Positions 12,766-46,011 of a stretch of DNA of 64,000 bases are shown piece by piece (the stretch's first letter is position 1; each line of letters begins with the position of its first letter). The stretch lies in contig NIVC01001879.1 of the NCBI GenBank assembly GCA_002269645.1, positions 62,001 through 126,000 of the forward strand. Reading direction: 5' to 3'. The translations under genes were made by a program, and so were the position numbers. Below the pieces are notes generated by a model. It saw only the letters and a program-made list of their open reading frames with translations. It searched no databases and had not been told where the DNA came from. This stretch comes from Macrostomum lignano (lineage: Eukaryota).

Positions 12766-13864
12766 GATCAGACAGCCGGGATCGAGCTCAGAATAGAGCT
12801 AAGAAGAGACACAGACCTTGAGCTGGCCGGATCGCTATTGTGAAGTTTCAAAGGACCAGTGAGATCAGGGGCGGACAGAAAGGCGTTGCGTGCCGCATGT
12901 GGTTGCCAACGGACCGGAGTTTGCGGACCCAGCATTAAATGTACACCCTGATTTTCCCAAAAAGACAGTATTGTAGCAGCCATTTCCAACACGGATACTG
13001 TAAAATTGAGTTACTGTAGTCGAAGTGATCGGTAGGTATAATTTATTCTCACCTAAGATACCGATAAAAATCACTTCGATAACTAAACCGGTATTCAGAA
13101 GCCTCCTGAGTAGAAGTTCGGGTTCAGGGTCGAGATACCGGGTCATGGAGCACTTTATAACAGAACAGATGTGCACAAAAATATTTTTATTACTCTTGGT
13201 GTCTGATTACCTGACAGTTCTTGCACGTCAGGGGTTTCAGTTTCGAATTGGTCCCGAAAAAATTTTTTGATGTATAATTTGCAAGTTTATTTAAACAAAA
13301 AAATCAATTTGTTAGCTCAGACTGTAAATTTGTGTTAGATAATACAATACGATTAGCATGACAATAAGGGTGACACATGTAAATAGTGAAAATTAACATT
13401 CGAAAATACTAGTAAGTGCACTGCAAGTTAAATAACAACAAATACATAACAAATACATCTAATTGTCTAGTAGCGCGTTAAATTAATGCACTTTATTAAC
13501 CTTTTTATTTTTTATAACAGTTTTTAAGTTTCATAATCCCGTAAGTTGTGCAACCGCGCGCATTTTACAGTATTGAAAAATTCAAATTCGTGCCAAAATT
13601 GACTAACTGCAATAGTAGCACCTGGCGTTAGAATTTCTCCTTAAGTTCAAATTAAAGTTTTAAGAACTTGAATTTTAGGTGACTAACAAGCGGAAAAAAC
13701 TTTTGTTAAATTAAAGTGTACATTTCGACACAAATTAAATTGACAAATACTTTGAATTGTTTACTGTTTCATAAAGTCAAGTGTGACTAAATTAAAGTTT
13801 TGTATGTCATTTCGGTAGGTCAGGAATATCAATTTTAAGTGAGAGATTTCTGCATGAACTTCTT

Positions 13865-17357
<3,493 letters not shown>

Positions 17358-18464
17358 ATCTAAAAATGGTAGCTACTCGTAGCTGTTGCTTAGGCTGAGG
17401 CGATACTAGAAGCTCAACAAAAACACACCATGCACAGCTTGCGTTTGCTTATGGCGTTGTGGTTCGAAGCTAATATTTTATATACTATATACGTTGAATT
17501 TCAGCGGACCCCACAGCTGTCCGCACGAACTGGCATGCCAAAGTAAGAATTTTTGTCTTATACAGAAATATAAATTGACAAAAAAACTGAATGTTAACCT
17601 GCGGCAAGAAAGAATGAATGAGATGGAAGGCTCCGACAGACGGAAAGAAAGAGAGAGAGAGACTGGAAGAATGTCAACAAAAATCTCTGCTTCCATATGC
17701 TCATAAATATAGTTTTAGCTATTTTCAGAAACTTTCCACACTGCACAGTAATTCAAGGAGTCCTTGCACTCAGCATCTGGGGTGAAATCTGTGTACAACT
17801 GAACAGCCTACAAATTGATATATAGTTAATCTTGTGGTATAGCTGCGTGGGGTAACGCTAATTTATTGTACTTTAACAATAGTGTAGTCAGGGAGGTAGT
17901 CTTGATGATGGCGCCCCTGTTGTTGGCGCCTCTGCTGCTAGAACCTTCAAATGAAATGGCGCCCCCTCAAAGAAAATGGCGCCCCCTCAAAGGAAATGGC
18001 GCCCTAAAGACGCACCACCAATAATAATCAAGTGAACAGACTATTGTTTTTTAGCTTTGGCCGACAAATATTTTAGGCAGCAGTTGATGCTACAATTCCA
18101 GATATTTTTGCATCTGGAATTCTTTGAACGGAGAGTGTCATGAGGCCGGGAGGAGGTGAAACAGTGGTTAGCTTGCTCGAATGCGAGGTAATTGAAAGAG
18201 AAAGATTAAATTCTACATTGTAATGTCTGACTGTGTCTGACTGTGTATGGCAGTGCAGTATTTACATTAATGCTCTCTGCCACAATCAAACAATAAGCCA
18301 TTTTTTGTCCAGTTGGTGTGCACAAAAAGTTTCACCTATGTTAAAGAGCTACAAGCTTCCAAACTACGTTTCAGGCAACTTCACGACCAGTTCTTGTGGC
18401 CCGAAGGACTGGTACTTGATGACCCCGTACACACCGTATATTAGTCCCTAACAAAGCAGCTATG

Positions 18465-25131: not shown

Positions 25132-25603
25132 TCATAGTAAGCCGAGCTGCTGGCGGAGTCGTCTGCGAATGAAGTTGAACAGAGGAATGTAGGACGGTCG
25201 GCTCAGTCTGTTCGAGAGTCCTGCGTAGGTATTGTAAGGTTTTTAGAAATTAGCATTGCTAGATGATATTAAAGAAACGTGAAAAAGCCGCACCTTTCTT
25301 GTCTCGTCTTCCAGCAGCAATCGATGACTTGTTAGCAGTCCCGCCGCCTTCTTCGCGATGCTGCTGCAAACCGCGTAAAATTTCGATGCACAATCGCATG
25401 GCAACCAGTTTGTCCACGGTAGCTTTCGTTGAGGCCATCAACTTGTTGATGACATCGTCCGGTGACCACCAATCAGCTCGTTCAACGTCGATCTTGTCCA
25501 TTTTCATCAAAGGCTGGCTGATGGCGATGGGCAGGGCGATGGCAGAAGCGACCGCCACTGCGGCGACGCTGACCAGGGCAAATATGACAAGAAATTTTAC
25601 CAT
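25132..25603 (-). CDS. Secreted prepropeptide paralog 1 (SYIPxFNF family), 2 exons, 132 aa
   Basis: Exon 1 25603-25294 (signal peptide, helical pro-region, ...RRDKK), 73-nt GT-AG intron, exon 2 25220-25132 encoding GLSNRLSRPSYIPLFNFIRRRLRQQLGLL*. TATAAAAG about 60 nt upstream of the ATG. Confidence 0.85.
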
Positions 25604-26082
25604 TGTTGCTTTCCGAGATTGCTAGCTTTTCTCAATAGGAATGCTTTCTACTCATTTTCGAAAACTTTTATAGGCGAATCCAAAGCGAAGGCGGCTTAAC
25701 AGATTAAAATTGTGGGGGTTGCTTGAGGAAGATTGGCTGTCGACGATTTCCAGGGGGGGAGGGAGATGATTAGGCCTAAAAAATTGTGCAAAATTGTTTT
25801 TGAAATAATAAACACGTGCATCGCACCACACGCAGAACAGAACGTCTATCGATTAGGTAGAAGCGATGATCAAATCTCAGACTATTTACGACAGAGATAA
25901 TCGAACACCTGCATGATTTCCCTGCCTAATATGTTTATTTCTCTACGCCAATATCGATCCCTTCACTTGGAGCCAAATAGCTCCTGTTATACCGAAAATA
26001 TGGGGACAAATGGGATAAATGGGGATTTCATGTGATCGGAAACCTTCCTGTGTTATTTTCAGTTTACTCGTAATACGAACAT

Positions 26083-28674
26083 ATGTTTTCATTGTGTAAA
26101 TCCCTTCTGCACCTAGATGGCAACTACACTACCAGTGCCGAAGGTTCGCTAAATCTTCTTTTCTCCACCTGCTTTCCGCAGGTTGACGAACCGGAGTACG
26201 TAGTCGAAGACCACAGGCCTTGTGACCGTCCGCTTTTCCAGCAGTGCGCCAGTCCCCGGCTTCTCCAGCTGGCGGCAAATTCTTTTAAACCGTATAAATC
26301 GCCTGGCCCTGACAATATCGCCCCCTGTATCCTTCAGGAGGCGCTTAAGCTGCAAAACTTTGCTGATTGTCTCTCTAAATTGCTTGTTTACTGTTTTACT
26401 ACAGGTTACATTCCCACAATCTGGAGAATGTCCAGAGTCGTGTTCATACCGAAACCCGCCAAGGGTGACTACACCAATGTGAAATCCTTCCGGCCCATCA
26501 GCCTCACTTCCTTTTGTGTTAAGCTGATGGAGAGGCTCATCCTGTGGAGGCTTCGAGAGTGCGACCTGCGCTCCGACCCCGTCAGTAAGTACCAGTACGC
26601 CTTCCAGCCTGGAAAGACGACTGAGCATGCTCTCCATGCCATTACCTCCAAGATCGAGAGTGCCATCCTTAGCAAACAACTCGCCTGCGGGATGTTTGTT
26701 GACTTCGAAGGAGCGTTTGACAATGTCCTTTTCCGCTCCTTCAGAAACTCTCTTTCCCGCAGGAATGTGAGACACAGCACTGTCCGCTGGATTTATTTTA
26801 TGATCCACAATAGGTTTGCGACATCTACGCTTATGGGCGTTACCTACACCCGGGCGGTGATGAAAGGCGGCCCGCAAGGTGGCGTGCTAACTCCACTTCT
26901 TTGGAATCTCGTCATGGACGAACTTCTAACCGCTGACATTCCCAGCAGTATCACCAGGGCGGGCTACGCCGATGACGTTGCCGCGGTCGTCAGCGGACCC
27001 GACCCCGCCACTCTGCGCAACCTGATGCAGCAATTCGCCGACAAGGCGGCCGACTGGGCTACGCAGCATGGCCTAAATATCAGCGTCACCAAGACTGTCG
27101 CTGTCGTTTTCACCAAGCGCCGTGCGTGGGAGATGAAAAACCTCACTGTCTATGGCAGAAACATCCCCTTCAAGAAGGAGGTCAAACACCTCGGTGTGAC
27201 GCTAACGCATGACCTGCGCTGGACGAAGCACCTTGATAACGTCATCGGTCGGGCAAAACGCTGCTTTGCCCAGCTGCGCAGAGCCATCGGGCCGACTTGG
27301 GGCCTCTCACCTAGAACGGTCCGTTGGATTTTCACCGGCATCATCCGGCCCAGTATCACGTACGCGAGTCTCATCTGGACTAGCGTGCTGGAGCAGAAGA
27401 CCGCCCGTCAGCGCCTTTACCAGCTTCAGGGCAGCATTTGCCGTGCCATCACAGGTGCGTACCAGTCTACCCCCTACACTATCCTTAACCTGCCTCCGCT
27501 TCACCTATTCATTAGGGTGGAGGCTATGAAGTCAGCCTCCCGGCTTATCAGAGATAAAACGTTAAATAACGCACCCTCTGGCTTTATGCCAATGAAAACA
27601 TTAATCCCGCATATGGACTTTGTCCGCCGCGACCTCAACAACATCCACATGGACCTGGGCAATGTGGATAGTCGACCTCCCGCCCTCAACATCAGGAGGG
27701 GCTTCAAGACCGCCATCCCTGGCCGAGACAATATTCCGCTGGATGTCGGTGTGAACCGGCGCAGCCAGGGCATTCACTGCTTCACCGACGGCTCGCTGTT
27801 CAACGGCCGCGCTGGAGCGGGTATTGCCATTTTCCACGAGGGTAAGATGCTTTTCCAGGAAAGTCTGCACCTCGGTGAGAACACCTCAGTTTTCCAAGCT
27901 GAAATCTGCGCCATTGAGCAGTGTGCCCAGCAACTGCTTCAGGCGAACATGAATAACTTTGACATTAATTTCTACACTGATAGCCAAGCTGCTATTAAGG
28001 CCTTAACCACTGAGAATATCTCCGCTGCTACAGTATCTCAATGCCTCCGCAGTGTGCAATCTCTCTCAGTCCTTAACAGGATTAGAATTATCTGGACACC
28101 TGGTCACAGCAACATCCTGGGCAACGAGCTCGCGGACTCTCTCGCCAAGGAGGGCAGCAACCCAGACGGCAACCATCGTCTGATGAGGCTACCCACTCCC
28201 AGGTCGCAAGTCACCCGCCATATCAACAGGTGGCTCCATCAGCAGCACCAGCTCCACTGGAACAGCTGCACCGAGTACAGGCAGAGCCGCTCTGCCATGC
28301 CTAGCCTGAACAGGAAAGTCTCTGATTATCTGATTTTGCTTAACAGAACCGACCTCAGGGAGATGTGCATGGTCCTAACCGGCCATGGATTCTTCCAGAG
28401 ACATATATCGTTGCAAACCGGTTGCCCTCCCACCTGTCCTTTCTGTGGCATAGGAGAGGAGACCTCAGAGCATCACGTCACCTTCTGCCCTTACTTCAAC
28501 AAGGCGCGGCACAAATACCTCGGCCACCCCCAGCGGATGGACGAGCTGACCACCCCGGACAATATCCGTGACCTGCGCGCCTTCGTCCGGGACTCCGGCC
28601 GGATGAGGGTCGCCGATGCCTCCACTGCGAACCTGCCGACTACTGGCGGGGACTGGGCGCACCCCCAGGGTTAA
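26083..28674 (+). CDS. LINE ORF2 remnant: reverse transcriptase + RNase H + CCHC-like motif, uninterrupted 863 aa
   Basis: [32 protein letters not shown]; RNase H FTDGS...QAEI...TDSQAA...[12 protein letters not shown]; CPFC-x8-H-x4-C. Confidence 0.95.
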
Positions 28675-28770
28675 TCCTTGTGCTCTTTTACCTTGGGGTT
28701 GCGATAGGGGCCTCGCGGCCTATTCGCGGCGCCTGCGCCCCCCGTCAGTACTGGTAGTAGTAGTAGTAGT
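26097..28770 (+). mobile_element. 5'-truncated non-LTR retrotransposon (I-group, Loa/Lian-like) with (TAG)n tail and TSD
   Basis: TSD TTTCATTGTG at 26087-26096 and 28770-28779; TAGTAGTAG tail at about 28755-28770; no endonuclease domain present. Confidence 0.9.
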
Positions 28771-29338
28771 TTCATTGTGCTTTTTTCAGGACCTTCTAGC
28801 ATGCAACCATTTATGAAAAATTGCACTAAAACTTGACGCTAGTTACATGAGAACGCCTTAAGCTGCTGTTTTACGCATATCAATGTCTCAAATGTCTTGA
28901 GGACTTCTTTCAGTGTAGAAGATAGGTTAATCACGAGATAAGGTAACAAGCATATACTGTGCAACGGTGCACAAAAAGTACTCCACACTTTTAAGCCTTA
29001 AGTTCACATGAAATCCCAATTTATCCCATTTCTCCCCATAGAGATCGACAAATTCTAAAATGGTTGATTTTCGATATAATGGCTTCAAATATAGCAAAGA
29101 CAGAGGGAAGCGGTCGAGGTGTGAATAGAGTCGGGTCGCTCTTCAACAAAAAGGATTTCAAAAAAGGACACTAGACACACACGGTCCGCCTTTGAGTTGG
29201 CCCTAATAATGGGTGTGATGCGGATGGCACGGCAACACATCAGGCCAAATTTTGTGGCCGAGCAGGGTGGGGCTACTCTGCCCTCTACTGTCTGGCAAAG
29301 CAAGGTATCGTACTACTAATGTTAGCTAGAATCGGTTG

Positions 29339-29707
29339 GAGGGAGGCCGTAGCCCAGCGGTAGCACAGGCTCTGGTGTGCCAGCGACCCAGGCTCGATTC
29401 CAAGTGCTGTCACATTAATTTGGGGCTAAATTGGAATCTCGGCTTGGCTCTGCTCATGCAATTAACGGCCTTGAGAGCCAACCCCCCAAAGCGCAGTGAA
29501 GTGTACATGCCTAACGATAATATAAAGTTAGGGCCGCTGTACACTCCTGTGTGAGTGTGTGCCTGCGTACGTATCCGCGCGCTTGTATGCCTGCTCAGGG
29601 GAGTCGGCGGAATGGGCAGTAATGCCTCTCGCCGGTTGTGTGCCTATGTCGCGTCGCTTAAAGTGCGCCAGGTTGCACACAACCCCCCTGCCTCTAATAA
29701 AATAATA
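29339..29707 (+). mobile_element. tRNA-derived SINE, 369 bp, with 11-bp TSD
   Basis: Pol III A-box (TAGCCCAGCGG) and B-box (GGCTCGATTCC) in the head; A-rich tail TAATAAAATAATA; TSD AGAATCGGTTG at 29328-29338 and 29708-29718. Confidence 0.88.
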
Positions 29708-30119
29708 AGAATCGGTTGAGTGTGTCTAACTTTAGGCGTTTAAGGCTGCTCGCAATTTGCCATAACTGTCGATTCGTGCCTACTAAGTGAAAATCCCAGG
29801 TAAGTGCAAGTACCATTCGTAGAGGATTCGTAGGATTTTCTTGTTACTTCGTGTACAATGAACGTAAAAATACAGAAAGCTAGTGAATATAAAAATACAA
29901 AATACAACAGTTAAAATCTCTTGAGTAAACGGAGTATTCAAGTTCATCATTTTTTTTCTGCACCGATTTGAAGTCGAATTGCAGTTGCCTTCTAGGTTGC
30001 GTGTTGTCTTTGATGAATTTTGCCAGAACTCCCATCTTGATCCACTGGAGTAAGGTTTTTTAATATTCGAAACCTTATATCCAAGATGTCCTGTTTAAAT
30101 TGGTCACCAAGAGCACTAT

Positions 30120-32100
30120 GTAGTTCCAACTGCATTTAACAGAGGCGAACTAAACACCACACCCCAAGGGAAGGGAAGGCGGACGCGAGTGTTCGCGAGC
30201 ATCGAGTACAGTGCGAGTGGATTCAATATCCAAAATCCGAAAAATGATGGGAAAATAGTGAAAGAAAAACGGGGGGGCACGCAGAATGCTGGGACACGCT
30301 TGCAAGTAAAAATAAAATAAACAGTCATTAAAAAAGCACTTCATCGATAAAACAACAGTCATCATTGCAAGAAAAAGATAAAATACTAAATAAGAAAAAA
30401 AACACGAGTTTAGAAGAAAAAAAATTTGAACATTGAGTCCAAGCCAGAGGAAAAAGAAAGCAGACAGCACACCAGCTTCTACCAGAGCAGGCAAACGAAA
30501 AATTATAGGCATTGAGACAGTTTGCGAACAGCCGCCAGCTGGAGGTCGAAGCCCTTTTCCAGCCCCAGGTACACCTCTACCGCCGAGCTCCGCCAGTCGC
30601 ATAGGGCCTTGACGACCGGCAGCGGCACACCGGCGCGGAACGCCAGCGAGGCGCCGCCGCGTCGAAGGCTGTGAGGAGACAGAGACCGGTCTGCCAGGCC
30701 GGCACTGTGGACGACGTGCTGGAACAGGCGACAGAACCGGGTGCCGGTCAGAGGCGTCAGGCCGCCGCTGCCTCGGTAGGCGAAGAGGTGGGCAGCAGCG
30801 GTGCGGTTGGGCTGGTTGATGCGCAGCAGGTGGTGAAGCAGCGCTGCCACGGGGCAGAGCGGGTGCTGCACCGCGTGCCGGAGGCGCGGCAGGACAACGC
30901 GGTGCACTCTCTGGCGGAACTGGTTCGTCTTGGAGCGCCGAATGTGCAGGATGACCAGATCCGGTGATACTTGCAGGTCGCCGCAGGTGACCGCCTCGCA
31001 GGCTGGTGGGAACGGTTTCGAGCAGCACAGATTGGCGCGGTGCAGGAGGCCTCAGAATCCGACCAGGACCGCCGCCCAGAAGGCTGCATCTTGAGGCTAC
31101 TGCAGGCGCAGGGTTCCTCGCAGTTTGAGGAGGTCACCCAGAGTGATGGGTGCCTTGCGCACCGGCGGCTTGGCGAGTTTGCGCTGCACACCGCGGAGGA
31201 GCAGGTCGATGCGGGGGTCGCGAGGAAGGCCGCGGCCGGTCTTGAGCTTGCAGTGCAGGTCTGCGGCGTTAATGTACGCACCGACGCTGGCATGCGAGGA
31301 GAGGCGGTCGGACAGCGCGATGCTGCAGGGACGGTCTCGTGCTGTCGATGCGCATCTACTTGCAGAACCGCTTCCAGGAGTCGATCTGGCAGCGGTAAGA
31401 GCGCGCGGTTGTCTCAGCGAAGGCCAGGTGGCAAAGCTCGCGGTAGCGCTTGCTGAAGTTCGCGCTCGGGACTTGAGGCGGGCGATCTGTAGGGCGAGAA
31501 ATTCTCAGGTGGCTGGCGAGAGGGTGTGCTCTCTAAGGTTGCTAAGGTCAGCGTGAACAGAGCCAAAGAGCCGGAGCAGGAAGTTTGTCAGCTCGCTAAT
31601 GTCATCGGCTCGGCTGCCACTATCAGCGAAGATCTGGAATGTCCCAGGGACGTGGAAGGCCTGGACGGAGAGGTCGCGGTGCGCAGCGAGAAGCATCAGC
31701 TGTTGCAGAGCCGAGTTGACGACCCGATTTGGCGACGAGCCCTTGTTGATGGCGCCGACTGCGGCGGTGCTGTCAGAGTAGATCACAAGCTGGCTGCCCG
31801 GTTGCAGCTGCTGCTAGAAATGCAGGGCCGTAAGCACTGGCGCGAGACTTTCCTTGAAGTTGATGTGCAGCGGCTCGATCTCGGTTGAGTCGCGGTGCCA
31901 GTCCTTGATGAGCCAGCTGGTGGTGTCTGGGCCGCGGATGATGCCGCAGCCGCCCCAGTTGGACGAGTCGGACTCGATGGCCCAGCTGGGCCCGTGGGAA
32001 CGCCAAATTTTGCAGCTGGGGGAGGTGGCCAGGCACCAGCTAAGGATCTCGCGGAAATCATTGTGCACGCGCAGTTTGTGCCGCTGCTGCTTCAACTTCT
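30120..32100 (-). mobile_element. Decayed Ngaro/DIRS-type tyrosine-recombinase retrotransposon (RNase H + YR part)
   Basis: DIRS-type RNase H fragments (ESDSSNWG, HINFKES, YSDSTAAV...NKG, FHVPG) and tyrosine recombinase (IRRSKTNQ, LCPV, PHSLRRGGAS, WRSSAVEVYL). Several in-frame stops and frameshifts; RT and gag absent. Boundaries approximate. Confidence 0.88.
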
Positions 32101-32934
32101 AAACTCACATGGCCTTTTGGGCAGCCCTTAGTCTCGCAGTCTTCTTGTTTCTCATAGGCCATGGCTTTATAAAGTTCTTTCCCATATTTTTTTGGTGGCA
32201 AGATCATCACAGGAGAATTGATATAGATGTAAATAAAATTCACAGCATTATCGGTTATGCTGGTCGCCACACCTTGTAATATTACATTTTGTTATAACGC
32301 GCAGAAGCTTCCAGAATATTCCGATACTCTCGCAGCACAAACTAAAACTACCGCCGATCGCTCTTTCGACATCCGCGACACGAAACGTCAGTCCTCGCTG
32401 GTTGGACGCCTGAAGCGTTAACAGCAGCACCTCCTGCTGTTAATTCCTAATTCATATTTTTTGTCGACAAAACAAGCAGGCTAAAACACCGTCATAATTG
32501 CCGTAGCTAGATTGCTTGACTTCAGCCGTAAATTTAACTCGGCTTCGAAGAGTTTAAACCCGTTTTATTTATTAGTAGACAACATTTAGACAAGTAATAA
32601 AATTCTGGTTACAGGGCTCTGGGATAAGAATGGGTAGAGAGTCTAAGGAACAGCATAGCATCACTACAACAAATATAGTTAATTTTGAATTGCAACACAT
32701 GGTTTGTTTGATTTGGGTTTAAAATTATATTTCTCTTTATAATCTCTTCAAGGGATGCATATATAGCTTTATAAATGTATACTTCTAAAACAGAGTGGGC
32801 CGAGTTTTCAACTTTTTTTAGAGACACTTGGATTTTTTTGAGACAACAAAGTCGTTAAACTACACATTACCATTTTAAAATCTTTTAAAATTGTTACTCG
32901 TCCGTAACGCCCAAGCATCAAAATGGTTGCTTGA

Positions 32935-33348
32935 TTACTGCAGCTTGATGCGAAGCGCGCCGCGTAAAAAGTTGAACATTGGAATGTAAGAGTGCCGGTG
33001 CATATAGTGTTCCATACCTGTGGGAGATAGAAAAACGAATAATCAATTATACAATATGACTAGATTCGAATGCAGTTTCAAAGCGTAGAGTCCAACGGTA
33101 AAAAGGTTGCACACACCTTTCTTGATTCGGGCGCCGGATTCAATTTTGTTGGATGCATCGCTAGCAGATTTTTCACCAGCAGGCAAGTTCTGCTTCAGCT
33201 GGGGCACCAGAAAGACCCTCATGAAATGGTTGGTCAGCCGACTGGCCAGCTGGTCGACGGCAGCGTTCGGCATCGGCCGACCACTGGCCCCACCAATGGC
33301 CACTGCAGACAAGCAGACGAGTGCGACTATCATGATCCGGTGATGCAT
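32935..33348 (-). CDS. Secreted prepropeptide paralog 2 (SYIPxFNF family), 2 exons, 104 aa
   Basis: Exon 1 33348-33117 (MHHRIMIVALVCLSAVAIGGASG...RIKK), 99-nt intron, exon 2 33017-32935 encoding GMEHYMHRHSYIPMFNFLRGALRIKLQ*. Confidence 0.85.
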
Positions 33349-35700
33349 ATTGCTGCAAAACAAATTCTTAAGTCAGAGTTGAGCTGTAAGTTCGCGCCGG
33401 CACAACTTTGCAGTGGTTGTCGAAAGTTACCTGGGTTCCGTATCGGCCTTGCTTATGTAGACGGATTCATCGGTCGGTGCGCTGAGATTGGCTTGCGACA
33501 TCTGTTAAGTTTTCCTGGTAGAGAAATAGCTAAATTTGGATGGACTCTTCGCTGCTTCACATCGACGCAGGTGAATAATTAGCAATTTAACAAAAATTGC
33601 TCGAGCGCCGTTGCCAATTATAATTATAATTCGAAAACTACTGTCGCACGGGCTCTTCTATTCAATTTTTTCCGACCGGTGAGACTTCACTTGCTTCAGA
33701 ATTTTTCTCGTCAGCACGTTTTTCGGCAGCTGGCAAATTAGGGCTTTCTTGTGAGCCATCGAAAGTTACGGGGAAAATTTGAGGTAGCTGCCGAAGACAG
33801 CTTAGATCGAGATAGCTTTCGTTCCAGGCGGTGGACGAGACGGTGAGGTACTCGATTGACTTCTGCCGAGCGCCGGGCCACCTTCAAGATCGGTGACGAG
33901 CGAGTTTCAAAAGCGGTGGCACTTTCTCACCGCGCTAGCCTGGTCCATCCAAGCGATCTGTTGCGCCGTTGGCGACTCCAGCTGGCAAGCCTGACGCACA
34001 CTCGACTGCTGTTGTTGTTATTGTTTTGTTGGCCTAAGAAAAGGGGACGTCAACGAAGCGGTGAAATGGATCAGGACCAAACCGACTGGAATCAATAACT
34101 GACTGGAAAAGTTGACTGCGTCTGTCTGTGATGGTGCCATCATCCGCCGCAACAGCACCGTCTTCAACAATCTATGGTGGCCTCCTCACTTGCCATTTGG
34201 ATTGGATTGGATTGTCCTTGGATTGGCCTTATGGCTGCCAACAGATAAAGCAACAACCTCCCAATAAATCTGGAAGGAATTTCTTTGCTTGCTTTGTCGA
34301 TTCCGGAATTCGTTTGACTCAGTGTTGAGTCCGCACTCTTATTCCGATCAAAGTTTCACATCCATTGATCGACGTCGTCATTATGCGACTGTATCACGAT
34401 CCTCAAGCTGCTGTTTTGGCTGTGGATTTCTAACTTTTTTCTGTTCAAATCTTGTCAGGTGCTCTACTGGGCGAAATGCGTGCGTCATATTCCTCTTAGG
34501 CGCCTCAGCGTGCTGAGCTCATCCAAGTAGACTCACTCCTTTGTAGTCTTAGAAGATCGTCAGATGATAAAAAATTTTGGGTTCACTGCATGGAAGGATT
34601 AACCAGTATAAGCTTGGTAAAAGAAAGTCGGGAGATGGAACAGAAATTTTGTCGAGTATTTCCAACGACGGTACCCACGGCACCGATTAGCAATGAGCAA
34701 TTACTTCACCGCTTCTTTGTCCAATTCAATTGCTGAAGCGCAATTTCCTAAGCACAGCTGCAGTTGAATGCGCTGAGGAAAAAATTATTAAAAACGAACA
34801 GCATCTTGGGTTTTCTAAATCGTTGCCTTTGGGAGAAATTATCAATTTTTCATACACCTGAGCAAGAAAATAGCTTGCAGAATTTCGCTTGTAGACAGCT
34901 TTGGGTGCTGACGCAACTTAGAGACTTGGTACTGCCGAGAGTATTGCTGAAATGCTGTGGCTCGTTGGGGAGAATTTTCTGGGATGTCGAGGCTCATGAT
35001 GCTGAAATGCAATGGAATTTTTTGCTGGCTAATGAAGGAGAACATGTTGGCTAACGCTCCCGACTGCCAGTAATCCCGCGCGGCTGTCCCCTGTCCTTTA
35101 CCTGCCCAAGTTCGTCGGCAGTTTGGTCCTGGCGGTCCTACTGCAGAGCGAGACTGCAGAGTGTCGACCCACGGCAACCCACAGCTGCTGAACTACACGA
35201 CTTATCTGGTTGAGGCTCGTCTGAGTTCGTATAATAACAGCTAAGCTAAAGAACTCGTTACCAAGAGGCTGAATTGAGATCGGGACTCAACAAAACGAGA
35301 ACACATCAAAAATAGCAACAAAAACTGTAAAGGCGGTGTAACAAAATCTGTGTTTTAAGGGGCTCCGTCGAGAGGGTCACAGAACTAGTTACCCAAACTT
35401 CGAAAACTACATACTTAGCCGGTATACCCACGGCAGAACTTCCTCTCATTCGAAGTGGAGTGATAAACCAGTACATGGTTACGCGTTCGCAGAGTTTGGA
35501 GTAGGGATCGAGACGCAGCCCCCTGATAAAGTTCAGCCCCAAATGCACTAAACCCTTGTGCCCTCTGGCGGAGTGGAGATCTTTAACGCATTAGTTGCGG
35601 TAGATTAGACTATATCCGATTCTCTTGAATCTCGATTCTCTTCTCTCTTGGCTTCTCTCCATCACGGTACTTTTAGTCCCTTCATCGTCAACAGTACATG

Positions 35701-37530
35701 TCTTTTCTGTGGCCTTTTCTGAGGCCTTTTCTGTAGCCTTTTCTGTGGCCTTTTCTGTGGCCTTTTCTGTGGCCTTTTCTGAGGCCTTTTCTGTAGCCTT
35801 TTCTGTGGCCTTTTCTGTGGCCTTTTATGTAGCCTTTTCTGAGGCCTTTTCTGTGGCCTTTTCTGAGGCCTTTTCTGTGGCCTTTTCTGTAGCCTTTTCT
35901 GAGGCCTTTTCTGTGGCCTTTTCTGTTGCCTTTTCTGAGGCCTTTTCTGTGGCCTTTTCTGTTGCCTTTTCTGAGGCCTTTTCTGTGGCCTTTTCTGAGG
36001 CCTTTTCTGAGGCCTTTTCTGTGGCCTTTTCTGTAGCCTTTTCTGAGGCCTTTTCTGAGGCCTTTTCTGAGGCCTTTTCTGTGGCCTTTTCTGAGGCCTT
36101 TTCTGTGGCCTTTTCTGAGGCCTTTTCTGTAGCCTTTTCTGAGGCCTTTTCTGTGGCCTTTTCTGTAGCCTTTTCTGAGGCCTTTTCTGTGGCCTTTTCT
36201 GTAGCCTTTTCTGTAGCCTTTTCTGTGGCCTTTTCTGTTGCCTTTTCTGAGGCCTTTTCTGTTGCCTTTTCTGTGGCCTTTTCTGTGGCCTTTTCTGAGG
36301 CCTTTTCTGTGGCCTTTTTTGAGGCCTTTTCTGTGGCCTTTTCTGTAGCCTTTTCTGAGTCCTTTACTGAGGCCTTTTCTGTGGCCTTTTCTGTGGCCTT
36401 TTCTGTTGCCTTTTTTGAGGCCTTTTCTGTGGCCTTTTCTGTAGCCTTTTCTGAGTCCTTTACTGAGGCCTTTTCTGTGGCCTTTTCTGTTGCCTTTTCT
36501 GTGGCCTTTTCTGTAGCCTTTTCTGAGGCCTTTTCTGTGGCCTTTTCTGTGGCCTTTTCTGTGGCCTTTTCTGAGGCCTTTTCTGTAGCCTTTTCTGTGG
36601 CCTTTTCTGTGGCCTTTTATGTAGCCTTTTCTGAGGCCTTTTCTGTGGCCTTTTCTGAGGCCTTTTCTGTGGCCTTTTCTGTAGCCTTTTCTGAGGCCTT
36701 TTCTGTGGCCTTTTCTGTTGCCTTTTCTGAGGCCTTTTCTGTGGCCTTTTCTGTTGCCTTTTCTGAGGCCTTTTCTGTGGCCTTTTCTGAGGCCTTTTCT
36801 GAGGCCTTTTCTGTGGCCTTTTCTGTAGCCTTTTCTGAGGCCTTTTCTGAGGCCTTTTCTGAGGCCTTTTCTGTGGCCTTTTCTGAGGCCTTTTCTGAGG
36901 CCTTTTCTGAGGCCTTTTCTGAGGCCTTTTCTGTGGCCTTTTCTGAGGCCTTTTCTGTGGCCTTTTCTGAGGCCTTTTCTGTAGCCTTTTCTGAGGCCTT
37001 TTCTGTGGCCTTTTCTGTAGCCTTTTCTGAGGCCTTTTCTGTGGCCTTTTCTGTAGCCTTTTCTGTAGCCTTTTCTGTGGCCTTTTCTGTTGCCTTTTCT
37101 GAGGCCTTTTCTGTTGCCTTTTCTGTGGCCTTTTCTGTGGCCTTTTCTGAGGCCTTTTCTGTGGCCTTTTTTGAGGCCTTTTCTGTGGCCTTTTCTGTAG
37201 CCTTTTCTGAGTCCTTTACTGAGGCCTTTTCTGTGGCCTTTTCTGTGGCCTTTTCTGTTGCCTTTTTTGAGGCCTTTTCTGTGGCCTTTTCTGTAGCCTT
37301 TTCTGAGTCCTTTACTGAGGCCTTTTCTGTGGCCTTTTCTGTTGCCTTTTCTGTGGCCTTTTCTGTAGCCTTTTCTGAGGCCTTTTCTGTGGCCTTTTCT
37401 GTAGCCTTTTCTGTAGCCTTTTCTGTGGCCTTTTCTGTGGCCTTTTCTGTGGCCTTTTCTGAAGCCTTTTCTGTGGCCTTTTCTGTGGCCTTTTCTGAAG
37501 CCTTTTCTGTGGCCTTTTCTGAGTCTTTTC
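35701..37530. repeat. 12-bp minisatellite GCCTTTTCTG(AG/TG/TA/TT), about 152 units, with an internal 0.8-kb higher-order duplication
   Basis: The rare variant CCTTTTATGT recurs 792 bp apart (35827, 36619), and the TTTTTTGAG variants recur about 852 bp apart. Confidence 0.97.
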
Positions 37531-38908
37531 CGTGGGCCGGTCCTCATATCCGGTTCTAGTAGCCGGTTCTGCTACAGGTCAATTTGGCTTGCTCAAATGA
37601 TAGAGGGGACTTGGGGCACGTCCTGCTGTTTCTATCTGCTTCGCACTTCTCTTCGCTGGCTTTTTTTCCCTTGTGGCTCTGGAGCTCTTCAATTCAAGCT
37701 TTTATGCATCCGTAGCGATCTGTTGGGACTTCACGAAGATTCCAGCGGTCAGACGGCATCATCCGCGAAGAGAACTTGCTTCCTTACAGCCAGCAGCGGA
37801 GGTGCTGCAGGAGCCACTCGGCGACTGCCTGTTGGATGACGCCCCATGTCCGGTTGGCCCCCTGTGACGCTGCTCTGCCAGTTTCTTAAGACTGTCTGAC
37901 TGCGTCGTTGGACTGATGGAAATTTACCTTACCGTAGAATAGTTGTTAAAACTCAAACGGCAGCAGAATTGGCCCAACTGATATTCATGTCAAAAAAGCT
38001 TCGTGTCTTTAACTTCAAACTTCGTACGTCTCTTGTTTAAATTATGAGACAGATCACTCCTAATACTAAAACTGACGTTTGTCTGTCTGTCCTAATACTA
38101 AAACTGACGCGATGTTTGTCTGTGTGTGTGTGTATTGCAAGTGAACTCCTACAATACTTGCAAGTCAGCGTCGAAATTTATATGGGAAAACTGCAAATTT
38201 TCCGGAGCAGGCTTTAGGCTATTTTAAGAGATGAGAGGAGAGACAGGAGAGACTAGATATAAGATAGCAAAGAAAAGAGAGCAGAGATGAGAGACTAGAG
38301 ATGGAAAGCAGATTAGAGAGAAGAGATAAGAGACTACACTGTAGAGATGAGAGGGCAAAGAGGAGAGCAAAAAAGGCTTTACAGAGGATTTGGAGATGAT
38401 TTGGAAGATGGGATTCAAGTCATGGAGTTTCAGCTGATGGATTTCAGGCAATGGAATTCCGGTGATGGGATTTCTTCCCCTATCTCCTCCGGAGGAGGAG
38501 TTCCACTCGTTTTTTATAAAACTGAAATAGTCTTAGTCAACAAGATGATTTGCATAAAATTCCATCCTTCAAAAAAATTCAAATCTGTATCTATGAAATT
38601 TAAAAAATATATATTTTCAATTATTAAAGCAAATTTTACGAGCGTAGTAAGCATGATCGCAAAATCGATTCGTCTTTTTATTCGCGTGAAACAGAAAATT
38701 CGTATTCGGGACAGTCAAATACTTCTTCAGTAGACGAGAAAGAATTTTTAAATCAAATACAGTTTTGAACTTATTCAGAGCTTTCAATTCAAATTTGAAT
38801 CAGCAATGATAATGTAATATTAAATAGGATTTCGATGAAAATTTAAAAATCAAGCCGCGTTCACTCCAGTCAGATGCACAATGTATGCAACTGACTTGGA
38901 TGGGGTGA

Positions 38909-39095
38909 ACAATCAAGGTCACAAAAATAAAGTAGATAGATCGTTTTACAATCAAGGTCACAAAAATAAAGAAGATAGATCGTTTTACAATCAAGGTCAC
39001 AAAAATAAAGGAGATAGATCGTTTTACAATCAAGGTCACAAAAATAAAGTAAGATAGATCGTTTTACAATCAAGGTCACAAAAATAAAGGAGATA
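38909..39095. repeat. 39-40-bp tandem repeat, about 5 copies, just 3' of peptide paralog 3
   Basis: Unit ACAATCAAGGTCACAAAAATAAAGNAGATAGATCGTTTT. Confidence 0.93.
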
Positions 39096-39136
39096 CTCGT
39101 ACGTAGATCGTTTTTATCAGTCTATCTTGCCAAAAT

Positions 39137-39556
39137 TCATTTGATTTTGTAGCGAAGCGTTCCGCGGAGAAAGTTGAACAACGGAATGTAGGAATTTCGG
39201 CTCAGGTTCTGATCAGTATCTGCGGTAGGAGGTCAGATTTGCAACAGTTGAAACTTTTGTTGTTGAAGCATCAAAATGCTCGCACAATGAATAAGATACT
39301 CACTTTTCTTAGCCCGACGAGAGTTGCGTTCTGGTTGGGGTATTTTCTCCAGGTTGTTCAGTTGTTCAACCACGTAAGCTTTAATGATCTCGCTTGCCAG
39401 CTGAATAGCCATTTGGTTTAACACTGTTTCCAACTGTACCAACTTGTTGTTAGTAGCTGTAGGCCTCTTCAGTCCCTCTTCGACTGGTAGAGCAATGGCC
39501 GAAGACACCACAGCCGAGAAGACCACTAGAGCCAGAAGGATGGATCGATGGTGCAT
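39137..39556 (-). CDS. Secreted prepropeptide paralog 3 (SYIPxFNF family), 2 exons, 111 aa
   Basis: Exon 1 39556-39304 (MHHRSILLALVVFSAVVSSAIALP...RRAKK), GTGAGT donor, 84-nt intron, exon 2 39219-39137 encoding NTDQNLSRNSYIPLFNFLRGTLRYKIK*. Confidence 0.87.
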
Positions 39557-40828
39557 GGTCGATCTTTAGCTTTGGAGCTTTGTTACAAACCTGCAATTGA
39601 AACCTGCAAAAATCGGCTTGCTTATATTGACAACATCGACACTTAATTGGGCTTGGCCTTGGGCCCGGGATTGGTCCAGCAGATCAGCGGTAATTTTGCG
39701 GCGCTGTTAAACGGCAGTTCTGGAGGCAGCTGCAGACGCATAGAGCTATTAAATCCAACAATCACCTGTGGTGCTCAAGATAATAGTTAACCATCCTTGA
39801 TCACCGGGGTATGGGTGGGCAGGCATTCTACAGTATTCAAAGATAAGGCCCAAAACTTTAAAATAAAATAACGCTTCGCCGCGCATTTGCGTCAAGAAAA
39901 GCAATTTTCTCTGTTAGATTGGAAGAATTAAAAAAGATTGCAGATGATTGTTGAAGTTATTTGGCACCTGGGCTAAAATAATTATCCAGGTTCCCGACTG
40001 GAGGGACAGGGAAGAAATACGCCAACAGATTTTCCAGGTACCGAGACTGATTTTTTTAGCGACGAACGCCAAAATTCGTCTTCATTTTTCTGCGTCTTTA
40101 AAGCGGCTTCTTCAACACTACGGATGATAGTCGGGTACCTTTCCCTTACTTTTCCTACTTGATACAGTACATGTAGATTTTCTGCAACGTAAAACTATCA
40201 TGATAAGCATGCGTTTCTCAAAGCATTTTTGAGAAACGGATAGATATAAAATGTTTGAGTAGATGTTGATAGAACGACAGTTTTCTTGAGTAATTTGCCT
40301 GTTTGCACGATCGAGCTCGTAGGTTTCATTAACTCAAGGACGTGACAGTCTCTTCTAACTTTTGCCGCGTGTCCTATCTTCAACTAACAAATGAGTTGAT
40401 CTTCACGATGATCAGACAAGAGACACTCGTGATTCGAAAGGTCACAGGTTTTTTGAAGATCAAAACACATGGTTTTGTAACTAAATTCACAAATACCCAT
40501 GAGAGCCAAGCCCAGAACAAACTGTGTGTTCATGCCTGATGATTAGAAAGTTAGGGTAGCTGTAACACCCTGTACTGGGCGTGTGTACGATTGCGAACCT
40601 GCGTACAGTATTGGTGCGCTATTGTATGTGCTCACTTAGCAGAATGGGTAGAATCGTCTCATCACCGGTTGTGACACGTCAATGCCGCAGGTGCATGTTG
40701 CGCCAGGGTGCCTTGACCCTAAAAAGCTTTGTTGTGAACTGAAGTCGCCAAAACGCCACTGCTGTCCATTATGATTTTGGGAGAGTTACGGACCCGGTCA
40801 CTTAAAAACGGTACTTAAGGCCAAGAAG

Positions 40829-41255: not shown

Positions 41256-44150
41256 ATGTCTGACTCTGTTAAAGTCCTACGTGAGAGGCTGCAAGGTCTA
41301 GGCTTGCCAACGTATGGCAATAAGGGTGATTTGATAGAACGCCTATTTCAGCATTGTCACACACTGGCCTCTGAACTGCAAAGTGGAGAAGCGGAGGCAT
41401 CAGACCAGTGCGTGAGCGGGGCGAGATCGACGGTAGAAAAAGGGAACGAGGCGGCCGAGCTACCGAGCGACGCGGGGGCAGCGGCGGCAACCGGAGGCCC
41501 AGGGTCTGGCGCGGCTGACGGCCTGGAAGCGGAGCAGCGGATCCGCCTGTTGAAGCTGCCAAAAGAGGAGGTCTGCTCCAGGCGGAGGTCAGCCAGCTGC
41601 AGCAACAGCCGGCCACCTCAGAGCTCCATGGTGAGTTCTTCGATGCCTTTATGTCGGAGGAGGCGCATACTAGGAAGCAAGAGATAGGGCTTAGAGAAGG
41701 CAGTCCCTACCGCATCACTGAGTTCATCGGTGGAGACGTTGACCGATGGGAGACTGGGTAGCTGGCAATGCACGCATCATGCTAAGAATGCTAGATGATG
41801 GCAGACTGGTGAAGCGAGGGGATGGTGGTTGCTCTGATGTGTCGGAGCTACGTGACTACCTGCACTGCACTGTTCGCATCGGTGAGCTGTTCGACTTCGG
41901 TTTCGAGAAGGCGCGGGTGCTGAGATTCGACAATGAGTGCCGGCTTGGTGACTCGCCTGGGAGGCGCGTGGTTCAGACATCGGCCTGGTGGCCACGTACA
42001 ATTGATGGCGCCACAAAAGGGCGAGGTCGCTGCAGAGAGACCGGTTAGGAGGAGCCAGGGCATCTGTTTCGATTTCAACAAGGAGGCTGGGTGCAGCAGG
42101 AGGAACTGCCGGTTTTCTCATCTGTGCCGGCGATGTGGTCAAGGCCATTCGGAAGCGGCCGTGCACGGGGGCCCAGCTGCGGAGGCGGGAGGGCTTCGAC
42201 ACAGACTGAATGGCGGTGAAGTTTTTAATTCCCGGATTTTATCTACCCACATGAATCTGACGGAGTGTAAGGAGGAGCTGAGTGTTGTAGATGTGCCGCG
42301 GGATCGTAAGAGTTTCATTTTGGATGGAATGACCAGTGGGTTTCGTATCACTAACGTTCCGGCCAGCAGCAGCGATAGGATCGAAGTCAGCAACTACAAC
42401 TCTATCAATGTTTTTATGGAGGCGGTGGAGAAGCAGATCGGCAAAGAGGTTGAGCTGGGCTGTTACCGCCTGTGCCCGAAGGGGCAGCGGCCTGAGATTG
42501 TGAGTGCCATCGGTGTCTTGCCGAAAGACAACGAACGGGTGCGCCTGATTCACGACTGTAGCCGGCCGGCCAGTGGCTGCGTCAACTCGATGTGGGTCGG
42601 TCAGGAGAAGCTGCACTTTTCTTGCGCGGAAAACTTTGCCAGGAAGTTGACTAGAGGGTGCTGGATGACCAAAGTCGACCTGAGAGAAGCTCATCGCGTG
42701 CGGTTGGTGTGCACCCTGACGACTTCAGCCGGACTGGAATCAAGTTTCGCGCTTTCGGAACTCCAACACTGCGTCCCACATGTACGACACCAGGCTACCC
42801 TTTGGAGCGGCGGCTTCGGTGACGTGCTTTCACCGGCTCAGCGAGCGATGAAGCTGATGATGGTGCGGAGAGGTTTCATCAGGACTGAGGCGTACTTGGA
42901 TGACTTTGCCTTTTGTGGTTCGCGTGAGGACTGTCAGAAATTTTCCGATTAGATGACTGACCTCGTGACTCGCTTGGGATTTACTTTCAACTGGGGACTG
43001 GGGCTAGTGTCAGCGGCCCTCTCAGCGTATGTCCTTCTTGGGTGTCGAGTTTGACACTCTAACCGGAGTGAAGAAACTGTCGGATGAGAAGGTGGAGAAG
43101 CTTGTCTGTCTGCTGGAGCTGGAAGCGGGAAAAACCAGAATTAGTCGGCGGTCATTGCAGCATGTGATTGGTAAGCTCGGTTGGGCGGCGCGGGTTATCT
43201 GTTCTGGGCGCACATTCATGCGGGAGTTGATCGATTGTTGCAAATGCTCTTCGGCCAGGGCAGCGGATGAAAAATATCGCTGAGCGGCTGCGGAGCTTTT
43301 TTCAGTGGTGGACAGTCTCGTTGAAGTTGTGGCCATCGAGTTGAATGATGTTGCCATCGAGTCGGATGCTTGCGGAAGAAGCAGTGCGGCGGTGCTGCGA
43401 ATGTCCAATGGTTTCTGGGACTGGTGCTATGTGGACTGGTTGATGGCCATGCGGACTTGGCGTTTGTAGAGCTGCCCATCAACTACAAAGAAGCGGTGGC
43501 ACCGCTGCTGGGCGTCATCCGTTGGAGGGAGCAGCTCAAGGGCTCCAGGAGCAGCATCTATTGCGACAACCAAGCCGCCTGCCACATTATCAGCAAGGGC
43601 GTTTCCAATTGTGCGCCACTGCAGCGGCTGCTGCAGACGGTGGCACTCACGTGCCTGCGTTATGGGATTAGTGTTCGTGCTTTCCCCGTGTCGAGCGAGT
43701 TCCAGATTTTTGTGGATGCGGCTTCTCGGCTGCATGAGCCTAGCCAGTTGTTAAACTTTGTCATGGTTCTGTGTGCCAGTGGGCGCTGGCGACTCTGCAC
43801 GTGCATGCTTTCTGCTAGTGGGGTCTGCTCCGCAAGTCTAGCCTGCTTCCCCGCAGAGCTAAGGGCCCAGAACCCATGCAGCGCTCCAACCTGCAGAGGT
43901 ACCCCAGGGGTCTTGTCCTGCGCTGCGATTTCGAGAAGACCATCGGACAGTTTAAGGAGCGCGTGCATCTGTTCCTTCTTCCAAGACTGGCTCGGCGGTT
44001 GGCACTGTGCCCTGACGCCGCCCTCGAGCGACACATCTGAGAATCGGCTGGTGTCGGCTGATCAGCTTCTCTTGTCGCTCTGCTATGCCCGGGGCAACCG
44101 ACGTTTGATGACGGGCCCGCAGTTTCTTTTTATTTCTCTTCGATTTTTAT
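41256..44150 (+). mobile_element. Decayed Ngaro/DIRS-type retrotransposon (SAP-gag, CCCH finger, RT, RNase H; YR largely lost)
   Basis: SAP-like LRERLQGLGLPTYGNKGDLIERL; ICFDFNKEAGCSRRNCRFSHLCRRCGQGH; RT PKDNERVRLIHDCS, KVDLREAHR, YLDDF; RNase H INYKEAVA, YCDNQAA. Many frameshifts. Right boundary approximate. Confidence 0.85.
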
Positions 44151-46011
44151 TCGGCTGTGTTTCAGTGTTGGTCACTAAGATGCAGTGACGTTTTATTGTC
44201 GGAGACTGAGATGACTCCGGAGCGCTTCTATAATGACTCTGCAAGGGCCGTAGAGTCGTACATGTATCTGAAGCGTACCAGAGTCGCTGTAAAATCACCG
44301 AGTAGCCTCTAAAGCGCATCTGCGTCACTATGAGTGTTAAAATCGCATTTTGAATTAATAACAACTCTAGTCTGCTTGAGTTAGTAGAAAGTTAATCACT
44401 GACACGACGACTCTTGGACGATTCTTTCGCGACTCTTACGATTCTGCAGTTCACGTGATGCGCACGTGACTCAACAGTCATCTCTCCGTCGCATTATAGT
44501 CGTTTCAGTCGTTAAAAAGTCACAAGAGCCGCTAGAGCATAGACCTTATACTCGTATTTCCTAGATAAGCCACTCAGCGAGTAGCGACCACAAGCATGCC
44601 CATAGAGCCTTTGTATTTCTTGAAAATTTTTGCGACTACGGTATCAGATCAGTAGCTTGTACGCGTATCAAGGGATTTTTATGGTAAATTTAGCTATTTT
44701 TAGTATAAATGCTTGCAAATGAAGTTTCTTTCACTTGAAGTAACGAACGAAAAACTTATTCAAATAAAACAGTTAAACATGTAAACGAAAATCGAGAGTG
44801 GGAGCAGGAGAATCGCCTATTGAGAGTGGCCTATCTAGGGAATAATGCGCTGTCTGTCTGTCTGTCTATAGAGTTACTAAACATGAGTCGTCTTAAAAGT
44901 CCTTAAAAAGTTTAGAGAGTCGCTGGAGTCACTATAATGAGCTGTTTGTAATGGTAGATTATGTAGTAGGTCAGGGAGGTAAATAATGGCCGAAACACAA
45001 GTGCACATAGCGCGAGTCTTACGGACGTTACTGCGAAGAGGCTAGAGCTCTGTTTGGGAGAAAAGAAGCATAGAAGGTTTGCCGAGGGCCAAAATTTCAG
45101 CAGAGTACGTGGGTTGAACCATAGACAAAAAGCAAAGAAATGCTTGATATGAAAAGGTTCAAGTAACGTAAAACTTAAGTTAAGAAATACCGGTCAAGGA
45201 GTTCTAACAATAGAACTCCCTGACCAGATCATGGTGCTTAATGCGCGTTCTAGGGTTAGAAGTTCGTGGCGAGCGAAGCGAGATCTGATATGAAATCTGA
45301 ATTGCCTTTTTGTAGCTTTCTATCTCCCCCGCATTTCAACCATAGACAAATTTTCAATAAAGTTAAGAATCATTAATGCAAAAATAGTATAGGATTACAT
45401 ATTTCATAGAAAATCATGGCAGTTTGCTGCACATCCATCCATAATGTAATTTTTGACGGCCTTCATTTCAGAGCCCATTCAACGGGTCAGCACTGCTATC
45501 CAGTAGGATTCAGGCTTGGTGCACACAAATTATAGGGATTAGAGAAAGCTAATTAATATAAGAATAAACCAACAAACAACACATTACAACTAATTATTAA
45601 GCGTCGATAAAAAGAGCATTATCGAATAATGTGTAATAATGTAGTCGCTGTGCACGAATATGTATTTAGACACACGCATGTTTATATAGAAGACCAATTT
45701 AAGACGCTTGAAAGATTAAAAGAGCTTATATAAAAAAAGATTTACACATACATCAGGCCAATTCAATTAGTTAAATTATCAATCAAAATCTGAATTAAAT
45801 AATTAAAACAATATCCAGATAATAATGGTAGGTTTTCAACTACTGAGAAGCGTAAATTTAGCACACCAATTAGAAATAGTGCCTGTATCTATAGTCCTAG
45901 AATATATAAGATATAACTAAATCAACTGGAATATTATATAGCCATCTGTCAATTTATTGAGGCATCATAATAAGTTTATAAATAAACATTATTTAGTGCT
46001 TAGTAACAAAT

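Follow-up and report, generated by a model that had tools for sequence, protein, structure and literature searches.

Three paralogous genes for predicted prohormone-like precursors with a conserved SYIP(L/M)FNF peptide in the flatworm Macrostomum lignano

Introduction

The closest described precedent for the genes reported here is the planarian spp/Planarin group, in which the Planarins of Schmidtea mediterranea (Smed-spp-6, -7, -8, -9 and -17) are lineage-specific paralogous prohormones clustered in the genome (PMC2953531). We analysed a stretch of 64,000 nucleotides from Macrostomum lignano (GenBank assembly GCA_002269645.1, contig NIVC01001879.1, positions 62,001 to 126,000 of the forward strand; hereafter "the window"), which holds three minus-strand genes, g1, g2 and g3, whose predicted secreted products end in a short peptide with an almost invariant SYIP(L/M)FNF core. 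Both groups belong to flatworms, are lineage-specific and encode products of <200 aa in which a signal peptide is combined with a conserved peptide bordered by basic cleavage site(s), and both comprise close-lying paralogs with similar peptides, an arrangement thought to stem, for the Planarins, from tandem duplication. They differ in that no database protein from outside M. lignano shows detectable similarity to the family described here, that the precursors of g1-g3 carry one KK site and one C-terminal peptide, which is not amidated, and that the duplicates are old (synonymous divergence, dS, ~1) rather than recent. Furthermore, the Planarins are cDNA-verified and many planarian peptides have been seen by mass spectrometry, whereas the gene models of the present family are predictions from sequence.

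Two other kinds of precursor are alike in layout. In precursors of the CRF/DH44/ELH and PDF types the active peptide is C-terminal, after a dibasic site and behind a poorly conserved spacer, and g1-g3 are predicted to have the same arrangement; the CRF/DH44 peptide has ~40 residues with a C-terminal amidation signal, and the PDF/cerebrin peptide ~18 residues and is amidated. Cecropin-like and dermaseptin-like antimicrobial peptides (AMPs), for their part, share with these genes a small precursor, a signal peptide, a cationic, Cys-free and helix-prone C-terminal peptide, and tandem paralogs. In some AMP families (e.g., those of frog skin), it is the mature peptide that varies, behind a conserved signal and pro part.

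Results and Discussion

Three spliced genes of common layout

Broadly, g1-g3 follow one plan, which runs from a TATA-like box through the ATG, a hydrophobic N-terminus, the rest of exon 1 and a GT...AG intron to a short exon 2 that ends at the stop codon. Their models are as follows:

g1, minus strand: ATG at 25603, exon 1 25603-25294, intron 25293-25221, exon 2 25220-25132; product of 132 aa, ending ...RRDKK, then GLSNRLSRPSYIPLFNFIRRRLRQQLGLL and stop
g2, minus strand: ATG at 33348, exon 1 33348-33117, intron 33116-33018, exon 2 33017-32935; product of 104 aa, ending ...ARIKK, then GMEHYMHRHSYIPMFNFLRGALRIKLQ and stop
g3, minus strand: ATG at 39556, exon 1 39556-39304, intron 39303-39220, exon 2 39219-39137; product of 111 aa, ending ...RRAKK, then NTDQNLSRNSYIPLFNFLRGTLRYKIK and stop

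All three introns (73, 99 and 84 nt in g1, g2 and g3, GT...AG in each) start one base after the AAG-AAA codons of a KK pair, and since the first exons (310, 232 and 253 nt) all have a length of 1 mod 3, all three introns are in phase 1. Exon 2 measures 83-89 nt. Reading on past the donors leads to a stop codon after 9-33 codons, inside each intron (an in-frame TAA in the g2 intron and an in-frame TGA in the g3 intron), and in the exon-2 frame itself a stop codon stands 6-11 codons ahead of the peptide, with no ATG separating the two in g1 and g3. The intron length of g1 (1 mod 3) shifts the frame, so that exon 2 lies in another genomic frame that is reachable by splicing alone. Judged from these frames, exon 2 can be translated only if it is spliced to the signal-peptide exon upstream of it, and we infer that this splicing takes place in vivo.

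These models bear out an initial annotation made from the letters of the sequence, which had described three minus-strand genes with a KK pair, a phase-1 intron one base after it and a small exon 2; the coordinates and spliced translations agree, and the three exon-2 peptides read exactly as given there. It had also pointed out that the open reading frame (ORF) track misses exon 2, and the program-made list indeed gives the read-through ORFs only (25259-25603, 33043-33363 and 39233-39556). A degenerate DNA pattern for YIPxFNF has three matches with 0 mismatches in the window, namely g1, g2 and g3, where ~0.16 chance matches would be expected even at 2 mismatches. No further family copies were found in the window by tblastn with all family members, by this degenerate pattern or by a pattern for the MHHR start.

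Conservation is concentrated in the exon-2 peptide

The exon-2 peptides share the consensus R-x-SYIP(L/M)FNF(L/I)R-x-x-(L/I)-R, with the conserved core of each gene at these positions:

25153..25200, minus strand: g1 core, R-P-SYIPLFNF-I-R-R-R-L-R
32950..32997, minus strand: g2 core, R-H-SYIPMFNF-L-R-G-A-L-R
39152..39199, minus strand: g3 core, R-N-SYIPLFNF-L-R-G-T-L-R

Between copies, exon 2 is 66-69% identical, vs. 57-59% for shuffled sequence, and it alone exceeds the shuffled level, at which the similarity of exon 1, of the intron and of 200 nt of flank on either side remains. Across g1-g3, the ratio of non-synonymous to synonymous divergence (dN/dS) over a 12-codon core is ~0.1 (dN 0.11-0.16, dS 0.85-1.43), with synonymous sites near saturation. 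Exon-2 similarity above that of shuffles and a core dN that is low relative to dS together indicate that exon 2 is translated in this frame and is under purifying selection, so that selection focused on the exon-2 peptide, already suspected in the initial annotation, is upheld.

When the three products are aligned with a fourth paralog encoded elsewhere (UniProt A0A1I8HG52, described below), the columns that are invariant after the signal peptide are P, A, L, Q, R-x-K-K and R-x-S-Y-I-P-x-F-N-F-x-R-x-x-x-R. The pro-regions are 16-25% identical for most pairs, with 53% solely between g2 and A0A1I8HG52. Given that g1-g3 are diverged duplicates (dS ~1), the best explanation is that they form, with at least one gene elsewhere in the M. 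lignano genome, a set of old tandem paralogs belonging to a lineage-restricted family.

Organization of the predicted precursors

At the N-terminus of each of the three products, residues 5-17 form a hydrophobic core (mean Kyte-Doolittle 3.0-3.2), with basic residues before it and small residues after it (ASA, ASG, AIA), and no second hydrophobic segment follows. A signal sequence, as predicted from hydrophobicity, and hence a secretory-type N-terminus is thus shown for g1-g3. At the other end of exon 1 lies an R-x-K-K site in each gene:

25295..25306, minus strand: R-D-K-K of g1 (cga gac aag aaa), a predicted convertase site one base before the donor
33118..33129, minus strand: R-I-K-K of g2
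39305..39316, minus strand: R-A-K-K of g3

The R and both K residues are invariant in 4/4 paralogs amid an otherwise diverged pro-region, and they account for 3 of the 8 columns that do not vary in the stretch from the signal peptide to the peptide exon. Cleavage after KK would leave peptides of 27-34 residues in one count (26-34 in the range proposed for the product), with predicted [M+H]+ of 3484.03 for g1, 3345.71 for g2, 3271.77 or 3143.68 for g3 and 3900.12 for the fourth paralog; for the short cores that further trimming might yield, the predicted values are 1210.65, 1268.61, 1227.64 and 1131.55. The exon-2 peptides of the four paralogs have net charges of +6, +3, +4 and +6; the pro-regions are net basic and not anionic; and Cys is limited to at most one per protein, with none in the peptide. 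A C-terminal amidation signal (Gly, or Gly plus a basic residue) is absent in 4/4 paralogs, the ends of which read ...GLL, ...KLQ, ...KIK and ...NQS; the initial annotation had already described this lack for g1-g3.

The AlphaFold model of g2 is of low confidence (predicted local distance difference test, pLDDT, 56; predicted template modelling score, pTM, 0.21), and consists of a signal helix, a pro-region helix (residues 29-53), a disordered part (54-88) with the KK site, and a separate helix (89-103) which spans PMFNFLRGALRIKLQ and is the best-scored block (~75). This modelled shape weakly suggests a processed precursor rather than a compact small protein.

A fourth paralog is the sole database relative

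The only related database entry is UniProt A0A1I8HG52 (A0A1I8HG52_9PLAT), a 104-aa protein of M. lignano that is uncharacterised and carries the automatic name "Secreted protein". This contiguous protein model, from an independent annotation, runs from MHHR... through a signal sequence to ...SRSKK-GAVATYVSRRSYIPMFNFLRGAIRKQLQKSINQS, and thereby has in common with g1-g3 the MHHR start, the signal peptide and the R-x-K-K followed by ...SRRSYIPMFNFLRGAIRKQLQ (a KKG...SYIPMFNFLRG design). It is 63% identical to g2, its closest gene in the window, and is therefore a fourth paralog and not an allele. It differs from g1-g3 in being encoded outside the window, in its longer tail (34 residues after KK) and in having RR directly before SYIP.

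A word-indexed search of 5.8 billion proteins returned no relative other than A0A1I8HG52, and HMMER, run exhaustively over 1.84 billion representatives, likewise found this paralog only. Full proteins and exon-2 peptides run through hmmscan against Pfam-A at E<=10 gave no peptide family, CRF and PDF included; the matches that did appear (PepSY_2, CRPV_capsid, DUF6332 and DUF7919) all lay far below the cut-offs and were set aside as noise, and a sequence search of PDB likewise gave noise alone. Full-text searches of the literature for SYIPLFNF, SYIPMFNF and shorter strings yielded nothing relevant and no description of the family. None was found in the Macrostomum neuropeptide literature either, where no M. 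lignano neuropeptidome turned up, and the motif is absent from the supplements of the planarian prohormone paper (PMC2953531). By these searches the family is undescribed so far, though its kind, that of lineage-restricted secreted propeptide or prohormone-like genes, is well known. What the initial annotation had claimed, a paralogous family of secreted type that belongs to no known one, therefore holds for the shared design of g1-g3 and the paralog named "Secreted protein" as well as for the Pfam, PDB and protein-set searches; the novelty that it saw is confirmed in that no described family matches, and qualified in that one member already stood, uncharacterised, in UniProt.

Prohormone-type processing and its alternatives

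The planarian prohormone criteria of Collins et al. 2010 (PMC2953531) call for a signal sequence, for a peptide bordered by basic cleavage sites and for a length <200 aa. In g1-g3, hydrophobicity gives a signal sequence; in silico, the peptide has R-x-K-K on one side, directly ahead of its exon, and the stop codon on the other; and the products are short (132/104/111 aa) and show no similarity to otherwise annotated genes. On in-silico criteria alone, this places the predicted products in the flatworm prohormone class.

We accordingly put forward, with a confidence that we would set about midway between doubt and conviction, that g1-g3 and A0A1I8HG52 are a lineage-restricted prohormone-like family, cut at R-x-K-K to release a C-terminal signalling peptide. 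Splicing of the transcript at the conserved phase-1 intron, the need for which follows from the reading frames, would join the signal-peptide and spacer exon to the short conserved exon. The signal peptide would then direct the product co-translationally into the secretory pathway, where a subtilisin-like proprotein convertase may cut after the invariant R-x-K-K and so release a non-amidated, cationic C-terminal peptide of 26-34 residues. A PC2 homolog has been recognised in M. lignano by sequence annotation, its in situ pattern suggests nervous-system-specific expression, and pc2 knock-down is lethal during postembryonic development (PMC4490696). In the peptide itself, the invariant core R-x-SYIP(L/M)FNF(L/I)-R-x-x-(L/I)-R would be the receptor-binding part. 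Since this core is bracketed by invariant arginines (RR in A0A1I8HG52, RRR in g1), further trimming at these flanking residues is conceivable, with a 9-10-residue xSYIPxFNF(L/I) peptide as a possible final product. The peptide would act as an extracellular signal (neuropeptide, hormone or secreted allohormone), with flanking residues specific to each paralog. It is tempting to go one step further and speculate, at somewhat lower confidence and as a tentative proposal, that the SYIP(L/M)FNF peptides are an unrecognised macrostomid- or flatworm-specific family of non-amidated signals with their own receptor, whose paralogs serve as distinct ligands from a tandem cluster.

Several observations weigh against prohormone-type processing. 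Splicing and processing are both predicted from sequence. Moreover, the g1-g3 products are absent from the 5.8-billion-protein set even though this includes the NCBI proteins of M. lignano, so that the genes appear to be unannotated in the NCBI gene set. With one basic site, no amidation glycine and no repeated peptide copies, the precursors bear a minimal precursor signature. KK is the least favoured dibasic pair for convertases, and furin-type enzymes want Arg at P1. As exon 1 ends ...AAAG-GT or ...AAAA-GT (the hyphen marks the splice site), the donor-site consensus could account for part of the KK conservation. Lastly, the ~8 residues that follow KK vary among the paralogs, which would be unusual if the whole 27-34-mer were the ligand.

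The weak and donor-overlapped KK site and the variable residues behind it would be easier to understand if the products were small secreted proteins, for instance of glands or seminal fluid, that are never processed, the KK remaining uncut, the variable residues forming a linker and the C-terminal helix serving as an interaction or anchoring motif. A signal peptide on a fast-evolving body is typical of reproductive and gland secretions as well, and M. lignano has dozens of unannotated seminal-fluid and gland products: of its 76 prostate-limited transcripts, 65 have a translatable ORF and 38 of these a predicted signal peptide (PMC5977470). SYIP, FNFL/FNFI and the coding DNA are absent from three supplement files of that prostate screen, which may, however, lack sequences altogether. 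Against an intact protein speak the P4 Arg and first Lys of R-x-K-K, positions that the donor consensus does not reach and that are invariant nonetheless; the g2 model, which predicts no compact fold (pTM as above) and places KK in a disordered linker; and the confinement of conservation to a C-terminal stretch of 16 residues with dN/dS ~0.1, which fits a ligand better. We thus regard an unprocessed secreted protein as unlikely, though as an explanation to be taken seriously.

The charge of the peptides (+3 to +6), their lack of Cys, the predicted helicity of the core and the tandem cluster of diverged paralogs would also suit host-defence peptides, antimicrobial or toxin-like, that are cut from the precursor and act on membranes. 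The positive net charge of linear cationic AMPs is thus present, but their amphipathic helix is not: 22-28% of shuffles attain the hydrophobic moment of the C-terminal helix (0.41-0.44; shuffle mean 0.30-0.35), which so gives no sign of designed amphipathicity. The pro-regions, moreover, are basic where anionic ones would be looked for, and the 8-residue core is almost invariant at saturated synonymous divergence, which puts the conservation in the peptide core, the reverse of what is seen in some AMP families. Membrane-active host defence, which the initial annotation had listed among its options, is weakened by these results to the point of being improbable. Its mention of an amphipathic helical pro-region and of a cationic amphipathic peptide stands in part, in that a helical pro-region appears in the low-confidence AlphaFold model, while the amphipathicity of the C-terminal helix is no better than that of shuffles.

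Descent from an ancient bilaterian family of the CRF/DH44/ELH or PDF type, of which these genes would be a very diverged flatworm member, has in its favour the precursor layout and a loose pattern resemblance, with no tool result in support. Neither whole proteins nor peptides match a Pfam peptide family at E<=10, the CRF and pigment-dispersing hormone profiles among them; the HMMER search over 1.84 billion representatives places no relative in another phylum or anywhere else outside M. lignano; and peptides of 27-34 non-amidated residues have the wrong length and ending for CRF/DH44 and for PDF/cerebrin alike. We consider such a descent very improbable, and the CRF/DH44 resemblance that had been remarked upon in the initial annotation finds no support in these comparisons. 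Decaying pseudogene copies or chance ORFs, for which one might cite the apparent lack of NCBI annotation and the surrounding transposons and satellites, are hardly credible either, as the ATG, signal sequence, GT-AG borders, phase and open frame are all kept in 3/3 genes despite randomised neutral sequence (dS ~1), and as a fourth paralog of the same design stands in UniProt.

Significance

M. lignano serves in the laboratory as a model of stem cells, regeneration, adhesion and sexual conflict, and RNA interference and in situ hybridisation have been applied to it (PMC4490696, PMC5977470). Four paralogs with a conserved core present a concrete and cheap target, with predicted masses, three genes that lie within 15 kb and could be knocked down jointly, and a peptide of a length that suits synthesis for receptor deorphanisation. 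Should the product be a signalling peptide, it would represent a lineage-specific ligand family in a basal rhabditophoran, and would be useful for asking how fast the peptide-signalling repertoires of flatworms turn over. The three genes also illustrate a blind spot of annotation, as they are seemingly missing from the NCBI gene set because their conserved part is a tiny second exon. The family is a clean and testable candidate for a new group of flatworm peptides in a tractable species, although families of orphan secreted peptides abound and the proposed mechanism holds no surprise. No general concept is changed by these results.

Elements flanking the three genes

Candidate promoter and polyadenylation elements around g1-g3 are pattern matches, which do not by themselves show function:

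25667..25736, minus strand: putative core promoter of g1, with CCAAT at 25736-25732 and, 69 nt ahead of the ATG, TATAAA at 25672-25667
25066-25061, minus strand: AATAAA of g1, 66 nt past the stop
33452..33491, minus strand: putative core promoter of g2, with CCAAT at 33491-33487 and a TATA-like ACATAAGCAAGGCCGAT from 33458
39621..39674, minus strand: putative core promoter of g3, with CCAAT at 39674-39670 and 39650-39646 and a TATA-like ATATAAGCAAGCCGAT from 39627

A short upstream element, CCAAT ... (A/C)ATAAGCAAG(G)CCGAT, is common to g2 and g3, the remaining upstream sequence being randomised, and g1 has CCAAT and a canonical TATAAA in its place. Beginning ~40 nt past the g3 stop, a 39-nt tandem repeat (38909-39095, 4.8 copies, 95% identity) likely lies inside the 3' untranslated region of g3; the 400 nt that follow this gene contain no AATAAA.

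Genomic surroundings

On the strand opposite to g1, and 480 nt upstream of its ATG, an intact ORF of 863 aa (26083-28674, plus strand) with RVT_1 and RNase H domains is read as a probable ORF2 of a non-LTR retrotransposon. Between g2 and g3 lies a 1.8-kb satellite (35702-37535) with the 12-nt unit CTTTTCTGTGGC, for which Tandem Repeats Finder (TRF) gives periods of 36, 48 and 60; it yields spurious ORFs of 619-644 aa. A second satellite, of 9.4 kb (47149-56556), is built of 24- and 33-nt units (CTTCAGTGTGAGTGACACCCCATC...) and gives rise, on either strand, to huge spurious ORFs that reach 3114 aa. Next to it, the C-terminal half of ARPC2, the 34-kDa subunit of the Arp2/3 complex, is encoded at 46428-46913 on the minus strand (Pfam positions 109-241, 99% identical to A0A1I8JC12), and its N-terminal exons must lie beyond or inside the satellite, which starts 236 nt upstream.

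Two further regions bear marks of mobile elements. The ORF at 63246-63863 (plus strand) has a DDE transposase domain of ISXO2/IS1595 type (E 7e-16) and is presumably a DNA transposon remnant. At 41933-44188 (plus strand), two long ORFs (339 and 272 aa) occupy a GC-rich stretch (53%), neither of them with a Pfam match at E<=0.01, and a YLDDF motif in one of them suggests a possible retroelement.

Near the start of the window, the intronless minus-strand ORFs at 692-1134 and 4196-4637, with translations identical over the 145 codons read, match loci that NCBI annotates as Ribosomal_S19-family (144 aa); between them, at 1832-3079, lies a gene with a ribosomal L1 domain, and the plus-strand ORFs at 675-1259 and 4221-4706 are antisense artefacts of the two. 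A phospholipase B-like (PLB) ORF, at 9768-11354, shares 99% identity with M. lignano BOX15_Mlig008036g1, and a paralogous PLB gene lies 100 kb away. Positions 1-20400 of the window as a whole are collinear with NIVC01000251.1 and NIVC01000175.1 of assembly GCA_002269645.1 at 95-99% identity and identical to neither, a pattern consistent with duplication (homeologous regions) in the M. lignano genome or with the sequence coming from a different assembly; the compared stretches of these two contigs end ~4.7 kb before reaching g1. The satellite arrays are not of equal size in the three sequences. Within the collinear part, homology to positions 2956-6962 of NIVC01000251.1 places an EF-hand gene (282 aa in the NCBI annotation) at ~13600-17400 on the minus strand, for which five exon chains are equally possible; its introns hold an (ACAG)n tract at 15913-16292 and, at 16590-17201, an array of a 22-nt unit, which is greatly expanded in NIVC01000175.1.

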